Shown here: one piece after another, positions 3,751 to 54,254 of the stretch
Numbering within the stretch: position 1 is the first letter of the stretch
How the letters are laid out: each line of letters opens with the position of its first letter
Sequence record: NC_025447.1
Direction: 5' to 3' (one strand)
DNA: 64,000 nucleotides
Program-made: the position numbers and the translations under genes
The notes under the pieces: model-generated
Told to the model about the DNA's origin: nothing
Database searches by the model: none
What the model saw: the letters and a program-made list of their open reading frames with translations, nothing else

Positions 3751-4646
3751 TACTTACCAGAGATGACAATCTTACCACTGAAAGAAATATCAGAAGTGAA
3801 GATTACATCACCAGTACTACTAATTTGTGTATCAGTCACTACCAATTCAAATGGAGATGACGAAACACTCCCAGGTGTTTTATTTGCATAAATTGAAATA
3901 TACAAATTATCTGGTGTTTGATTGTGTTCAGATGCAGGAATAGTGATTGTAAAATCACCATCACTAGAAACCCAATCTGCTTGGTTTACCAATTTACTAT
4001 AAGGTACTGTCATTGTTGTTGCTCCTATAATGTTTACTTTAACACTTGCATAATCTGTGATTTGACCAATCACATCAATTGTTATATCCCCAATACCACT
4101 AACTGTTACTGTGGTTTGGAATACTGATTCCAATGCAACATTACCTGGGTCACCTTGTAGTTGGATCATAATATCAGAACCTCTACCATGAACTGATTCT
4201 GGTAGTGTGTAAGTATAATGATCAGTAGTATCTGGCACTAATGTAAATGCAGAAACAGGAACTATTTCAGTAGTTACATATGAGCTATCAGTCCCAGGTG
4301 AGCTACCTTTAAATGGTTTCCAAATACCAAGATCTTTAATATAAATTTGAAGAACATTAGTACTATCAACCAAAAAGTAAACGTCACCATCTAGACCGAT
4401 CGAATCGGATGGTGCTGTTGTTCCACGTAAGATACCAGAACTACCACCACCACTGTGTGCGTTTAAATATCCCAATGTAACCAAGTGTGTGTTTGCAGTT
4501 GGTTCACCTGCTGAAATTGGAAGAAGTTGTGTTCCTGAGTAGTTTTGAATTTGCACAACACTACCATTTGTGGTAATCTGTGCACCATTCTTCCCAAGAA
4601 TGAAGGACTTCTTCATGGTTCCTTCTAAATTAGAAAAAACTGCCAT
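3750..4646 (-). CDS. Putative tail spike/fibre adaptor structural protein (298 aa)
   Basis: N-terminus MAVFSNLEGTMKKSFILGKNGA is paralogous to that of the adjacent depolymerase; GTTAPSDSIGLDGDVYF motif typical of fibre proteins. Confidence 0.5.
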   Translation of the reverse strand: MAVFSNLEGTMKKSFILGKNGAQITTNGSVVQIQNYSGTQLLPISAGEPTANTHLVTLGYLNAHSGGGSSGILRGTTAPSDSIGLDGDVYFLVDSTNVLQIYIKDLGIWKPFKGSSPGTDSSYVTTEIVPVSAFTLVPDTTDHYTYTLPESVHGRGSDIMIQLQGDPGNVALESVFQTTVTVSGIGDITIDVIGQITDYASVKVNIIGATTMTVPYSKLVNQADWVSSDGDFTITIPASEHNQTPDNLYISIYANKTPGSVSSSPFELVVTDTQISSTGDVIFTSDISFSGKIVISGK

Positions 4647-29567: not shown

Positions 29568-30332
29568 TTAATCCTTTAATAATATGTTAAAATTATCATA
29601 AAAGTACTTTTTTAGTACCGAAATATAGTCTTCATTATACTTCAATCGAAGTAAATTTATTCCATTCTCGGTGCAGTACGTGTTTTTAATTTTATCATTG
29701 TGTTGAGTTTGTTTTAGTGATTTTGTTCCACCCCAATGCTCTGAACATTGAAAATGTTGTTCACCATCATATTCGATACACAAGTTTAAATCTTCAATAT
29801 AAAAATCAAATGGCAATGTTAAAATATTCTTACAATTATCAAATCTCTTTTCTCTAACATATTTAAATGAAGATAATATATTTTCTATATCTGATACTGC
29901 CTTGGATTGAGTACTATCTCTCATACATTTTTCACACCCGTATCTACTATTCAAGTGATTATCAGGTCGCTGGTAGAATATACCATGTATTGGACAAATT
30001 ATTGATATATGTGTTTTATTATTAACATAATTAGCCATACTATAATCAAATTTATTTTTAAATTTAAAATTGGCTTTTTTCTTGAAATTTAAAAAATTAT
30101 GTGGACTTTTTTGCCTATTTGTATTATATTCAATAGAACATTTCATGCATCCTTTGCCACATGTATGGTCATTTGGTGTTTGTAGAAAAAATCCATGTTT
30201 TGCACAGCCAATCCATACTTTTGTTTTAGCATTATGATATTTAACCATACTATAGTCATATCGTATACCATGAACTTTTATCGCATTGGTTACAAATTTA
30301 TATTTTGTCGATCTAGTGGTTGCATATTTCAT
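29568..30332 (-). mobile_element. Free-standing homing-endonuclease-like gene (DUF723-type Cys repeats + PD-(D/E)XK/Vsr-like nuclease)
   Basis: Two YDYSMxxY...CxxHGxFxQxPxxH...GCxxC repeats; C-terminal LPFDFYIEDLNLCIEYDGEQHF; lies between gp25 and gp6. Confidence 0.75.
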
Positions 30333-51112: not shown

Positions 51113-52288
51113 ATGTCACAACTACTAAATGAATCCAAATGGGTAGCAGTAAAAGAGAAACTAGTTGAAGGTCTACAGGGTACTCGTAAGTCTGTAATGG
51201 AAACTGTTCTTGATAACCATCGTAAAGTTATGCTAACTGAATCCGCAACTTCTGGTGCAACTACCGCTGGTAACATCGCTACTCTAAACAAAGTGATTCT
51301 ACCAATTATGCGTCGTGTAATGCCAACCGTTATTGCTAACGAAATCATCGGTGTTCAACCTATGACTGGTCCAGTTGGTCAGATCCACACCCTACGTGTA
51401 CAATATGCTGATAACGCACCTGGTGTAATCGCTGGTGAAGAAATGCTTTCTCCATACAAAATCGCTAAATCTTACTCTGGTGATCTAAATGCGGATAATA
51501 GCAACCCACAAGCTGCTCCTACTAGCCAACTAGAAGGTACTATGGGTCGTCGCGTTAACATCCGTATTCTACGTGAAACTGTTGAAGCGAAATCTCGTCG
51601 TCTATCTGCACGTTGGACTGTTGAATCTGCACAAGATGCTCAATCCCAACATGGTGTTGACGTTGAAGCAGAACTAATGGCTGCAATCGCTCAAGAAGTT
51701 ACTGTAGAAATCGACCAAGAGCTACTAAGCCGTCTACGTGCACTACCTGGTGCTGCTGCTGTAACTTATGACCAATCTAAAGTTACTGGTGTTGCAACCT
51801 TCGTTGGTGATGAGCACGCTGCTCTAGCTACTCTAATTAACCGTCAAGCAAACGAAGTTGCTCGTCGTACTAAGCGTGGTGCTGCAAACTGGGCTGTTGT
51901 TTCCCCAACTGCACTAACCATTCTACAATCTGCTACTACTTCTAGCTTTGCACGTACCACTGAAGGTACTTTTGAAGCACCAACTAACGTTAAGTTTGTA
52001 GGTACTCTAAACAGCACTATGCGTATTTTCGTTGATACCTATGCTAGTGATGCAGAAGATATTCTAATTGGTTATAAAGGAAATGCGGAAACTGATGCTG
52101 GTGTATTCTATTGCCCATACATCCCACTAATGGCTTCCGGTACTGTAATGGACCCTAACACTGGGGAACTCGTTACAACTTTCTTAACCAGATACGGGTA
52201 TGTTCAGTTGACCGATAGCACCAGTTCACTAGGTAACGCTGCGGACTACTACAGCAAAATCGCTATCAAAAACGTTACTTTCATGTAA
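51113..52288 (+). CDS. gp23: Major capsid protein
   Basis: IIGVQPMTGPVGQIHTLR, VEAKSRRLSARWT, EIDQE and FYCPYIPL motifs; extreme codon bias. Confidence 0.97.
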   Translation: MSQLLNESKWVAVKEKLVEGLQGTRKSVMETVLDNHRKVMLTESATSGATTAGNIATLNKVILPIMRRVMPTVIANEIIGVQPMTGPVGQIHTLRVQYADNAPGVIAGEEMLSPYKIAKSYSGDLNADNSNPQAAPTSQLEGTMGRRVNIRILRETVEAKSRRLSARWTVESAQDAQSQHGVDVEAELMAAIAQEVTVEIDQELLSRLRALPGAAAVTYDQSKVTGVATFVGDEHAALATLINRQANEVARRTKRGAANWAVVSPTALTILQSATTSSFARTTEGTFEAPTNVKFVGTLNSTMRIFVDTYASDAEDILIGYKGNAETDAGVFYCPYIPLMASGTVMDPNTGELVTTFLTRYGYVQLTDSTSSLGNAADYYSKIAIKNVTFM

Positions 52289-52330
52289 TTGTAATAGATT
52301 TAAAAGATTTAATCAAAAAAAATAAAAACA

Positions 52331-52361
52331 AAAGGGACTCTTCGGAGTCCCTTTTCTTTTT
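52331..52361 (+). terminator. Capsid operon terminator (cUUCGg)
   Basis: AAAGGGACT-CTTCGG-AGTCCCTTTTCTTTT. Confidence 0.9.
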
Positions 52362-52373
52362 ATTAAAAAACCC

Positions 52374-52402
52374 TTTACACAATGTTCTGGAATGTATATA
52401 AT
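52374..52402 (+). promoter_or_regulatory. Sigma70-type promoter for the homing endonuclease
   Basis: TTTACA-N17-TATAAT. Confidence 0.75.
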
Positions 52403-52434
52403 ACGCACATACACGAAAATAAAGAGACAAAATT

Positions 52435-53532
52435 ATGCCAAACGTAAGTATCAACAAAGAAGAGTTTATCAGCAAAATGACTGCTAAGTATGGTGAATTT
52501 GATTTCAGTACTTTAGTATTCAAAGCAAGTAAAACAACTGTGAAATGTAACAAGTGTGGAAAAGAAAACATAAAATCTGCACTTCGTCACATTGCATGTA
52601 CATGTGCATCATGTTATTCAAACATGTCGCAACGTTCAAACAACGACACATTCATCAGCACGGTAGAAAATAAATTTGGTAAAGATAAATTCAAATTTGA
52701 TAAACTAAATTACACTAACGCTATAACAAAAGTAACACTCTTTTGCACTGATGAAGAGCACAACGATTACTTTGAAATAACACCAAACAAATTTCTTTCT
52801 GGTAAGGGATGTCCTGTGTGTAATAAAAATGAAGCATACAGTACTGAATCATTCACTGCAAAAGTAAAAGAAAACTATGGTGATGCATTGGATTTGACAA
52901 ATACTGTTTATGTCAATCAGAAAACTAAAGTAACGGTTCATTGCACAAAAGGACATCACGACTGGACAGTAGATCCAAAAACTTTAATCGTCGGTAAAAC
53001 TGGCTGTGGTACATGCTCTGGTAAAGGTGGACGAAGTACTGAGCGTTTCATTGAACTAGTATCACCAATTCATAACCATAAGTATGATTATAGCTTGGTG
53101 GATTATACAACAAGTGAGAAGTATGTGGATATTGTGTGTCCGACGCATGGTGTTTTTTCCCAACAACCAAAAGCACATATGGCGGGTAAAGGATGTCCAT
53201 CATGTGGTGAATATGGATATCAACCATCAAAACCTGGATATTTCTATGTTCAAAAACTAACTAACAATGACAAGACGGTGTACAAATATGGAATCACTGG
53301 TGATATGAAACGCCGTGTAAACGAACAAAGTCGTAATTCTGGGTTCGAACATGAAGTACTAGTAGAACGCTACTTTGAAGATGGAAATCAACCATTACTG
53401 TTGGAAAAGTTCATAAAGAAATACATTGAAAGTGGAGTAGTAAGTACTGAAGAGTTGCCGTCAGGATTTACTGAAACGTTTGATGAAAAGTATCTAAAAT
53501 CTGTACTGGAAATTGTAAATAACTTTAAGTAA
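52435..53532 (+). mobile_element. Free-standing homing-endonuclease-like gene (DUF723-type repeats + GIY-YIG/T5orf172-like nuclease)
   Basis: Repeated Cys modules (KVTLFC...GCPVC, CTKGH...GCGTC, CPTHG...GCPSC); C-terminal YFYVQ...YKYGITGDMKRRVNE. Confidence 0.75.
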
Positions 53533-53555
53533 ACAATCTAAAGGAGTTGACACGG

Positions 53556-53906
53556 ATGTTAACTGTATACAAATTTAATAGAGAAGAGTACTTAAAGAGT
53601 CAGTACTCAAACATAGAAATAAATGTTCCTTATGGGACATTAGTTGGTTATGATGAATCCACCGAAACTTTATATTATAATGATGATAGATTGGATTATA
53701 GTTTAGATTCTTTTATAGAAGATATACTAAACACACATACTGAAGATATGTTATATGAAGAATACATAGATCATTATAGGGAACGTATGTCACAATTACA
53801 CTCGGACGCTCCAGTACTAAACATTACACAAGAACCTTCTGAATTTCAGCCCCATAATCCTTTTCAACGTTTAATAGATATTGGTTTGAAATTCACTATT
53901 AGTTGA
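53556..53906 (+). CDS. Hypothetical protein
   Basis: AGGAG RBS, ATG 53556. Confidence 0.55.
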   Translation: MLTVYKFNREEYLKSQYSNIEINVPYGTLVGYDESTETLYYNDDRLDYSLDSFIEDILNTHTEDMLYEEYIDHYRERMSQLHSDAPVLNITQEPSEFQPHNPFQRLIDIGLKFTIS

Positions 53907-53927: not shown

Positions 53928-54254
53928 ATGATGGAGATTGAATCTATGTCACAGATATGTTATGTTATAATAAATTCTGCATGGCCTGAGTATGTTAAAA
54001 TTGGTTTTACTTCAAAATCAGAAATGACAGAACGTCTAAGAACGTATCAGACTGCTACACCATTTCGTGACTTTGAAGTATATCATGAAGTTCATTTTGA
54101 TGACGCACGTTTAGCTGAAAAAGAGATACATAAAAGGCTTAAACAAATGAATGCAACTAGACAACCAAACACGGAGTGGTTTAAAATGTCTAAAAAGATA
54201 GCAGCAAACATCATTGATTCTGTGTGGGATGATATGGATAACGACTTGCTATAG
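53928..54254 (+). CDS. T5orf172/MUG113-type (GIY-YIG-related) small protein
   Basis: CYVI...VKIGFT...ERLRTYQT...AEKEIHKRL...EWF. Confidence 0.75.
   Translation: MMEIESMSQICYVIINSAWPEYVKIGFTSKSEMTERLRTYQTATPFRDFEVYHEVHFDDARLAEKEIHKRLKQMNATRQPNTEWFKMSKKIAANIIDSVWDDMDNDLL

Follow-up and report, generated by a model that had tools for sequence, protein, structure and literature searches.

The window analysed here, a stretch of 64,000 nucleotides from sequence record NC_025447.1, is 100% identical to Escherichia phage 121Q, a Rak2-like jumbo myovirus of the genus Asteriusvirus with a genome of 348.5 kb. Near the 3' end of its T4 gp23-like major capsid protein gene lies a patch of 24 codons (codons 351-374, patch 1 in Table 1) that is synonymously recoded, varies in every Asteriusvirus while the encoded peptide does not, and is co-inherited with the type of nuclease gene found in a sporadically occupied slot directly downstream. 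Based on these comparisons, patch 1 is probably what the slot endonucleases recognise, a region that has been recoded time and again for immunity and is co-converted with the nuclease genes. An earlier note on this DNA had proposed the patch as the immunised target site of the neighbouring endonuclease, an interpretation that turned out to be largely right in substance, yet in need of refinement. Capsid locus and slot are situated at about 335.5-338.1 kb of the 121Q genome.

Table 1. Position, strand and basis of the features discussed in the text (coordinates of the window).
Feature	Position	Strand	Basis or remark
Nuclease-like ORF, free-standing, 254 aa	29568-30332	-	DUF723 zinc ribbon, weak DUF2726; homologous by profile (E 2e-25) to the DNA-binding portion of the slot nuclease
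Major capsid protein gene (T4 gp23-like, 391 aa)	51113..52288	+	Pfam PF07068 (Gp23), E 1e-89; annotated major head protein of 121Q
Patch 2, weaker synonymous hotspot, capsid codons 306-318	52028..52066	+	synonymous diversity 0.42
Near-invariant stretch left of patch 1, codons 332-350, candidate cut position	52106..52162	+	0-3 differences per 54 nt between all backgrounds
Patch 1, synonymously recoded, codons 351-374, candidate recognition region of slot endonucleases	52163..52234	+	synonymous diversity, comparison
Left half of patch 1	52163-52198		
Right half of patch 1	52199-52234		
Intrinsic terminator of the capsid gene	52330..52355	+	11-bp stem and T-run
Cassette promoter, sigma-70-like, TTTACA-17-TATAAT	52374..52402	+	11/12 consensus matches
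Putative homing endonuclease, free-standing, 365 aa, A-type	52435..53532	+	Pfam, PHROG 681, motif, domain model
Four Cys-pair zinc-ribbon modules	about 52546-52614, 52744-52821, 52942-53016, 53137-53205	+	alignment
C-terminal T5orf172 (GIY-YIG-like) domain	53218-53529	+	
Right cassette junction including ribosome-binding site of the next gene	53533..53556	+	common to A, B, C and E types
Conserved 116-aa ORF, right flank of the slot	53557..53906	+	phrog_15724; in all relatives
T5orf172/MUG113 domain alone, 108 aa, without DNA-binding part	53928-54254	+	in every relative including empty-slot outgroups

A synonymously recoded hotspot in the capsid gene

The codon bias of the capsid gene is very strong (codon table, 51113..52288). 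Leu is encoded 25 times by CTA and twice by CTT, besides single CTC (52169), TTA (52184) and TTG (52208) codons. For Arg, 19 CGT codons stand beside one CGC (51551) and one AGA (52190), and for Gly 23 GGT codons beside one GGA (52079) and two GGG (52163 and 52196). Both GGG codons as well as the CTC, TTA, AGA and TTG codons and the sole ACA codon of the gene (52175) are confined to 16 codons at 52163-52210. Sequence and counts of these 16 codons had been given exactly in the earlier note. If synonymous codons are permuted among the positions that encode the same amino acid, at least seven rare codons per 16 are reached in 50 of 200,000 trials. A scan of all open reading frames (ORFs) of at least 200 amino acids (aa) in the window (n=31) revealed a strong cluster of this kind only in the capsid gene (p about 3e-4; next best 0.024). 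Across the capsid genes of the 121Q group CTA makes up about 88% of the Leu codons, an uncommon preference among E. coli phages. No tRNA genes that could account for this bias were found in the 64-kb window, so that any matching phage tRNA would sit elsewhere in the genome.

In all, 38 capsid genes were compared, 25 from GenBank relatives and 13 from IMG/VR and metagenome contigs. A metagenome scan with an invariant 26-mer returned ten loci; it added L117, L118 and L120 (empty slot) and L119 (occupied slot), and several of the other loci repeat IMG/VR contigs that were already part of the set. All capsid genes are unbroken ORFs of 1176 nt, except in two poor-quality records. In the codon alignment, codons 351-374 vary in every Asteriusvirus with an unvarying peptide: synonymous diversity peaks at 0.62 per codon, over a background of about 0.03-0.3 outside the patch (about 0.03-0.17 over most of the gene), and nonsynonymous diversity is 0. 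The 38 genomes contain 31 haplotypes of patch 1, which within Asteriusvirus differ by up to 36% of their nucleotides and by no amino acid, while the bulk of the capsid gene diverges by at most about 8% among the sampled genes of the genus. Even in relatives of about 65% amino-acid identity the peptide of the patch is recognisable. The feature is real and, as had been claimed, one of the DNA and not of the protein; only its span, previously given as 52160-52225, has to be extended on the right to about 52234 (codon 374).

The hotspot is sharply delimited. Both flanks (codons 332-350 and 375-391) are almost unvarying, even between backgrounds that are 6% apart. UB, JP4, CRJP21, E9.1, SHEFM2K, SD-6 and PBECO4 show 0/885 differences over codons 1-295 and up to 17-18 differences per 75 nt in the patch. 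Among ten near-identical phages, compared over about 8 kb around the slot, nucleotide diversity (pi) is 0.172 at 52170-52229, 0-0.06 over the 4 kb upstream (about 0-0.03 outside a second hotspot, patch 2) and, right of the slot, no higher than 0.075. Moreover, codons of both families occur at all eight Ser, Leu and Arg columns of patch 1, compared to 3 of 67 such columns elsewhere and none within codons 1-295. TCN/AGY switches, which need at least two changes, affect each of the three Ser codons of the patch. Judged from the alignment, the changes look selected at the DNA level.

Two explanations that involve no immunity have to be weighed here. Repeated breaks and error-prone repair beside the slot might raise the local mutation rate, with purifying selection leaving only the synonymous changes. 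The hotspot is indeed located just 130-200 bp from the insertion point, and a 22-nt deletion at the second hotspot in the record of phage SD-2_S15 would fit as well. However, local hypermutation hardly accounts for the Ser switches, which require coordinated changes, nor for the 54-nt flanks on both sides that are nearly unvarying. Furthermore, the 17-18 nt by which phages with identical 885 nt differ in the patch point to the import of pre-formed haplotypes instead of point mutation in place. We thus regard hypermutation as very unlikely. The second explanation is a programmed cluster of rare codons that slows translation near the C-terminus for capsid folding or assembly. This would agree with the 7-11 rare codons that every Asteriusvirus haplotype possesses among its 24 patch codons. 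Yet closely related phages with an empty slot, whose peptide is alike but for one Thr/Ser difference, have only 2-5 rare codons in the patch, and the identity of the rare positions varies between haplotypes, while a pause site should conserve them. Neither would a translational pause predict any link to the slot type, and RNA folding of 52140-52260 is unexceptional (z = -0.48). Such a pause therefore appears highly improbable to us. An RNA element or intron scar in the patch was rejected given the same folding result, the unbroken capsid ORFs and an Rfam search at E<=1, which delivered only weak sub-threshold matches on the terminator and none in the patch.

The slot and its nuclease genes

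The left boundary of the cassettes is found at about 52364, just past the T-run of the capsid terminator, where every cassette and every empty site diverges. Every cassette starts directly after this T-run with a promoter-like sequence of its own, and those of the T5orf172 type share one 30-nt junction before the next gene. In 121Q, the putative endonuclease gene 52435..53532 starts 147 nt past the capsid stop codon; both this proximity and the sigma70 promoter of its own that the earlier note had seen were confirmed. The -35 hexamer of this promoter (52374-52379) reads TTTACA in 121Q and has the consensus form TTGACA in UB and CRJP21. On the other side, TAAGTAAACAATCTAAAGGAGTTGACACGG forms the terminal junction of the A, B, C and E cassettes alike and is followed by the 116-aa ORF. 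The empty sites (n=3) differ in sequence from each other, and in SD-6 the terminator directly abuts the start codon.

Five families of nuclease-like ORFs (A/B, C, C-like, D and E) were found in occupied slots. A-type genes (365-368 aa) are present in nine phages, B-type genes (300-307 aa), which equal the A-type without its first zinc module, in six and C-type genes (332 aa) in three, while a C-like gene (328 aa) and an E-type gene (406 aa) occur in one phage each. The metagenome locus L119 contains an A/B-family gene of 329 aa, and in one phage, UE-S1 (L102, 4381-6039), the slot holds an unrelated nuclease-like protein of 552 aa (DUF7487 and MTES_1575, phrog_3339 'homing endonuclease'). The nuclease ORF is absent from PBECO4, SD-6 and fEgEco12, and the slot is empty in these phages as well as in SD-2 and the outgroups. 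Such sporadic presence and absence of an ORF between conserved genes of close relatives is characteristic of free-standing homing endonucleases. The part missing from the B-type genes (L091, L092, L093, L094, L105) comprises about 64 aa, the first zinc-ribbon module of the A-type, and their remainder is partly mosaic: slurp01 and WPEC5 have module 4 in common with CRJP21 and Turkey3. A target to the right of the slot was considered and rejected, since the 116-aa ORF showed no purely synonymous peak; its synonymous and nonsynonymous sites both vary.

The protein encoded by 52435..53532 matches the Pfam family DUF4379 with 27.4 bits (cut-off 24.5) and, more weakly, DUF723 and CapR. It further matches PHROG 681 'endonuclease' (E 1e-78), while phrog_559 'HNH endonuclease' covers the zinc-ribbon part only (residues 6-196). 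Y271, Y283, K284, G286, R294, E324, T346 and E347 are unvarying across the A, B, C and E types. Hence both hallmarks of the T5orf172 family were found, a C-terminal domain with the Tyr/Arg/Glu motif and N-terminal zinc modules. The AlphaFold model of the domain (pLDDT 90) shows the secondary-structure order strand-strand-helix-strand-helix, which is compatible with a GIY-YIG fold, and in BFVD it resembles CapR-homology, GIY-YIG and homing-endonuclease-named phage proteins (TM 0.85-0.98). The full-length model is mediocre (pLDDT 69); a shallow alignment from IMG/VR loci was used for the models. A profile search of the PDB sequences with the slot nuclease came back empty. With a dN/dS of about 0.11 among the nine A-type genes, the protein is maintained by selection. 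Going by profiles, motif and domain model, we assign the slot ORF to the putative homing endonucleases of the T5orf172 zinc-finger family; it is therefore not a T4 Seg, Mob or Hef protein. A comparison with those proteins had been drawn before, but the Pfam families obtained are T5orf172, DUF4379, DUF723 and CapR, and neither a GIY-YIG nor an HNH model of the classical kind was matched.

Co-inheritance of patch and nuclease type

The haplotype of patch 1 moves with the nuclease type across unrelated capsid backgrounds, as expected from the earlier note, which had tied the patch to the neighbouring mobile nuclease. Patch distance correlates with slot type (Mantel r=0.60, p<=5e-5) and not significantly with the bulk of the gene (r=0.08), while r=-0.07 was obtained for bulk versus slot type. 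For example, 121Q and BF17/A4 carry the same A-type ORF and differ at 54-68 of 885 bulk positions, but at 1 of 75 in the patch. The B-type carriers slurp01 and WPEC5 show 52/885 differences in the bulk and 0/75 in the patch, CRJP21 and Turkey3 56/885 and 1/75. The groups in the tree of A-type genes (CRJP21/Turkey3, BF17/A4, SP27/Ec-M-J and 121Q/UB/JP4) are also the patch groups and cross the capsid tree. In addition, carriers of one nuclease type share tracts whose left ends lie at 52053-52105, just left of patch 1. Flanking markers are inherited with the nuclease gene, and at the level of populations, as distinct from a cross, this linkage is the signature that co-conversion would leave.

We infer cleavage, its position and immunity from these patterns, and the following scenario could be envisioned. 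The slot after the capsid terminator would be a landing pad for free-standing homing-endonuclease genes, mostly of the T5orf172 family, which would rely for expression on early-type promoters of their own. In a mixed infection, the zinc-ribbon array would bind codons 351-374 of the sensitive capsid allele of a rival, and the C-terminal nuclease would cut in or beside these codons, perhaps in the invariant stretch to their left as bipartite GIY-YIG enzymes do. Repair that copies the donor would then bring the endonuclease gene together with the last 100-250 bp of the donor's capsid gene into the rival. Since the peptide of the patch is fixed, escape would have to be synonymous and would come at the cost of rare codons, which would be forced into an optimised gene. 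Altered or swapped zinc modules would select further recoding and lead to many haplotypes, of which the patch of 121Q would be an allele that resists its own enzyme.

Alternatively, the slot might just be a recombination hotspot whose swaps drag diverged flanking capsid DNA along, so that the patch hitch-hikes without being recognised or cut. Patch haplotypes do travel with the slot contents, the common cassette flanks could support plain homologous exchange, and UE-S1 has an unrelated nuclease, yet the patch of EC.P1. However, passive exchange should bring donor-level divergence and some amino-acid changes, while the patch reaches 36% without any and the bulk remains at or below about 8%. The 54 nt from the patch to the stop codon are nearer to the slot and nevertheless nearly unvarying. 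Besides, the left half of the patch and the homing-endonuclease gene (HEG) from about 52650 onward both distinguish UB from CRJP21, although the 250 nt in between (52199-52447) are free of differences and the next 200 nt contain four. Passive mosaicism of this kind is, in our view, unlikely.

If patch 1 is indeed the recognition region, its halves might correspond to parts of the enzyme. The HEG differences between UB and CRJP21 are densest over modules 3-4 and the nuclease domain, variant forms of module 3 and of the left half are shared by Ec-M-J and SP27, and the B-type genes, which lack module 1, are all accompanied by a non-A right half. One might speculate that modules 3-4 read the left half-patch (52163-52198) and modules 1-2 the right half (52199-52234), while the nuclease cuts in the invariant stretch further left; swaps or deletions of modules would retarget the enzyme, and recoding of a half-patch would restore immunity. 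As the hint stems from two or three events that are confounded by linkage, this modular pairing is rather doubtful. If true, the pair would represent a natural, readable protein-DNA code for a new modular nuclease family.

The polarity of the recoding speaks for the main reading as well. In the capsid tree, Asteriusvirus and its sister clade (Munch, PHA46, L107, L003, L004) are nested within empty-slot lineages, and the outgroup consensus uses the preferred codons GGT, CTA, ACT and CGT. Six of the nine empty-slot relatives outside both Asteriusvirus and the Munch pair lie 1-6 nt of 72 from this consensus, while all 22 occupied-slot genomes are 11-23 nt away; the empty-slot genomes L004, L117 and L013 take 9, 13 and 14 nt. 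The expectation of the earlier note that endonuclease-free relatives retain GGT, CTA and CGT thus holds insofar as the phages nearest to the preferred codons all have an empty slot, but some other phages with an empty slot lack this form.

Several observations weigh against our interpretation. The contrast between occupied and empty slots (Mann-Whitney p = 6e-6) is descriptive only, since the 'ancestral' consensus was built from empty-slot outgroups, which makes the comparison partly circular, and since the genomes are related and do not represent independent samples. PBECO4, SD-6, SD-2, fEgEco12 and PHA46 are free of the endonuclease and nonetheless all carry recoded patches. L117 (JACCDR012566085.1) has an empty slot and otherwise ancestral codons, but Ser-family switches in the right half-patch. 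The C-type carriers do not share a common haplotype of patch 1, and the patch of UE-S1, despite the unrelated nuclease in its slot, is identical to that of the B-type carrier EC.P1. Regarding the enzyme, the T5orf172 score of the 121Q ORF (18.5 bits) stays under the Pfam cut-off of 20, which its C-type homologues from the slot pass with 26 bits, and Foldseek searches of the PDB with the domain and full-length models gave no match at E<=0.001.

The recoded phages without a nuclease gene deserve a closer look. Heavy synonymous recoding was found in 22 of 22 carriers, but also in five non-carriers. PBECO4 and SD-6 share GGG, CTC, ACA and TTG with 121Q, and the patches of PBECO4, SD-6 and SD-2 differ by 0-1 nt from that of the C-type carrier SHEFM2K. 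The patch of fEgEco12, with GGG, TTG, GTC, CTT and AGG, is that of the B-type carriers WPEC5 and slurp01, while PHA46 and its closest relative Munch, a B-type carrier, are 15 and 16 nt away from the outgroup consensus. Together with L117, these phages demonstrate that recoding does not require a resident gene. The earlier note had named rare codons in endonuclease-free relatives as an observation that would speak against it, and in part this is what PBECO4, SD-6 and fEgEco12 present. Consequently, the idea that the rare codons are private to the endonuclease-positive allele has to be given up in favour of a multi-allelic hotspot across the genus. The most plausible reading of the recoded phages with an empty slot is that they carry resistant empty alleles or have lost the gene recently.

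The same phages could be taken to mean that another sequence-specific agent is evaded, either a nuclease of a co-infecting phage that is encoded elsewhere or a host defence, and that the linkage to the slot is merely physical. Candidates exist, as the window contains another nuclease-like gene (29568-30332), and a stand-alone T5orf172 ORF (53928-54254) is present in every relative. However, such an agent does not predict that the patch correlates with the slot type and not with the background, nor that in A- and B-type genes the left half-patch co-varies with zinc modules 3-4 across 450 intervening nt that are all but unchanged. The stand-alone ORF is moreover present in outgroups that keep the preferred codons. 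Evasion of an agent unrelated to the slot is quite unlikely in our opinion.

Patch 2 might add to the picture of slot endonucleases acting on the capsid gene. In 121Q it consists mostly of preferred codons, and a recoded form, 'GAG GAC ATT TTG', occurs only in all three C-type carriers, PBECO4 and SD-6. Between UB and SHEFM2K the first differences are encountered at 52039. Patch 2 may be the target of the C-type enzyme. The record of Salmonella phage SD-2_S15 (L098, about 4046-4047) shows a 22-nt frameshifting deletion in the capsid gene that corresponds to 52045-52066 of the window and falls exactly over the variable segment of patch 2. Most likely, the deletion is either a scar left by repair or an artefact that arose in assembling a mixed population.

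Known systems and other nuclease-like genes

T5orf172 zinc-finger nucleases rank among the commonest suspected selfish genes of phages. In general, free-standing endonucleases cut a nearby conserved gene, and repair copies them into the rival together with flanking markers (review). MobE spares its own genome by virtue of nucleotide polymorphisms at the target (PMC2790892). By analogy, the 121Q locus appears to add a new case to a phenomenon already known, intronless homing combined with immunity of the target. As with SegF and gene 56, SegG and gene 32 or MobE and nrdB of T4, a free-standing nuclease gene is located between conserved genes. In these T4 systems the neighbouring essential gene contains the target, at a distance of tens to hundreds of bp from where the nuclease gene is inserted, and the flanks are co-converted. 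However, Seg proteins of T4 are GIY-YIG and Mob proteins HNH enzymes, whereas the 121Q gene encodes a T5orf172 domain with an array of several zinc ribbons and putative activity. Furthermore, T4 and T2 provide a contrast of two alleles, while the genus of 121Q offers 31 synonymous haplotypes and several enzyme variants.

Three other T4 genes are instructive. Like the 121Q gene, segD (GIY-YIG, between genes 23 and 24) is free-standing and directly downstream of a gp23-type capsid gene. In contrast to the co-oriented 121Q gene with its own promoter, segD is antisense to its neighbours and lacks a dedicated promoter, and the review lists no known target for it; the two proteins are likened by position only. 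In the MobA/gene 60 bypass cassette, a coding sequence is altered at the endonuclease target so that the carrier is not nicked, which resembles our proposal for 121Q. Yet gene 60 contains a 50-nt insert that needs ribosomal bypassing, while in 121Q immunity would come from synonymous substitutions alone. I-TevI finally shares the 'beads on a string' organisation with the 121Q enzyme: specificity comes from its binding part, and the catalytic domain, which makes few demands on sequence, cuts some distance away. I-TevI differs in that it is encoded by an intron, that its nuclease is N-terminal and that its binding domain is a helix-turn-helix, while the 121Q enzyme has a C-terminal nuclease and a zinc-ribbon array. 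A design like that of I-TevI would fit a recoded binding region beside an invariant stretch.

A further comparison is offered by the putative T5orf172 homing endonucleases that Barth et al. (2023, PMC10448857) describe from ICP1 and other phages and that have the same architecture, with repeated zinc fingers of the CapR/DUF723/DUF4379 type and a C-terminal T5orf172 domain. According to that study, T5orf172 homing endonucleases are built in a modular fashion as 'beads on a string' and are overrepresented next to capsid genes, and CapR, the repressor of PLE, derives from their DNA-binding domain. Capsid genes account for 31% of the T5orf172 neighbourhoods described there, and the 121Q gene has such a neighbour as well. 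Deletion and shuffling of modules are common to both, the B-type without first module being comparable to the in-frame deletion of a gp174 repeat in ICP1. In the available text 'synonymous', 'cut site' and 'recognition site' occur 0 times each, and it contains no target site or recoding, while the 121Q locus presents a candidate target that co-varies with the enzyme, in a jumbo coliphage host. In the literature on 121Q or Asteriusvirus with endonuclease we found no prior description of the patch, and in the searchable literature no DNA target of any T5orf172 zinc-finger nuclease. What distinguishes the locus is the depth of its natural allelic series and the first candidate target for T5orf172 zinc-finger nucleases.

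This candidate target is concrete and testable: it measures 72 bp and belongs to a capsid gene that is essential and highly conserved. Sequenced E. coli phages provide a natural allelic series, with 31 haplotypes and no fewer than nine variants of the enzyme, that could be used to study specificity, immunity and co-conversion. If our reading is correct, conflict with homing endonucleases can prevail over strong codon optimisation even in a gene that ranks among the most highly expressed of a phage, and it can leave the capsid gene, a frequent phylogenetic marker, locally mosaic. In addition, clusters of rare codons in strongly biased genes beside mobile nuclease genes could flag targets. The earlier note had gone further and considered targets predictable from codon usage alone. 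This applies to the very biased capsid gene, the one clear positive of the window, but it has no support as a general rule: no rare-codon cluster was found in the neighbours of the nuclease-like ORF 29568-30332, which is located directly upstream of a 1153-aa ORF. The small protein of 53928-54254 is a different case, as the conservation of its ORF in every relative makes it look fixed or domesticated, not mobile.

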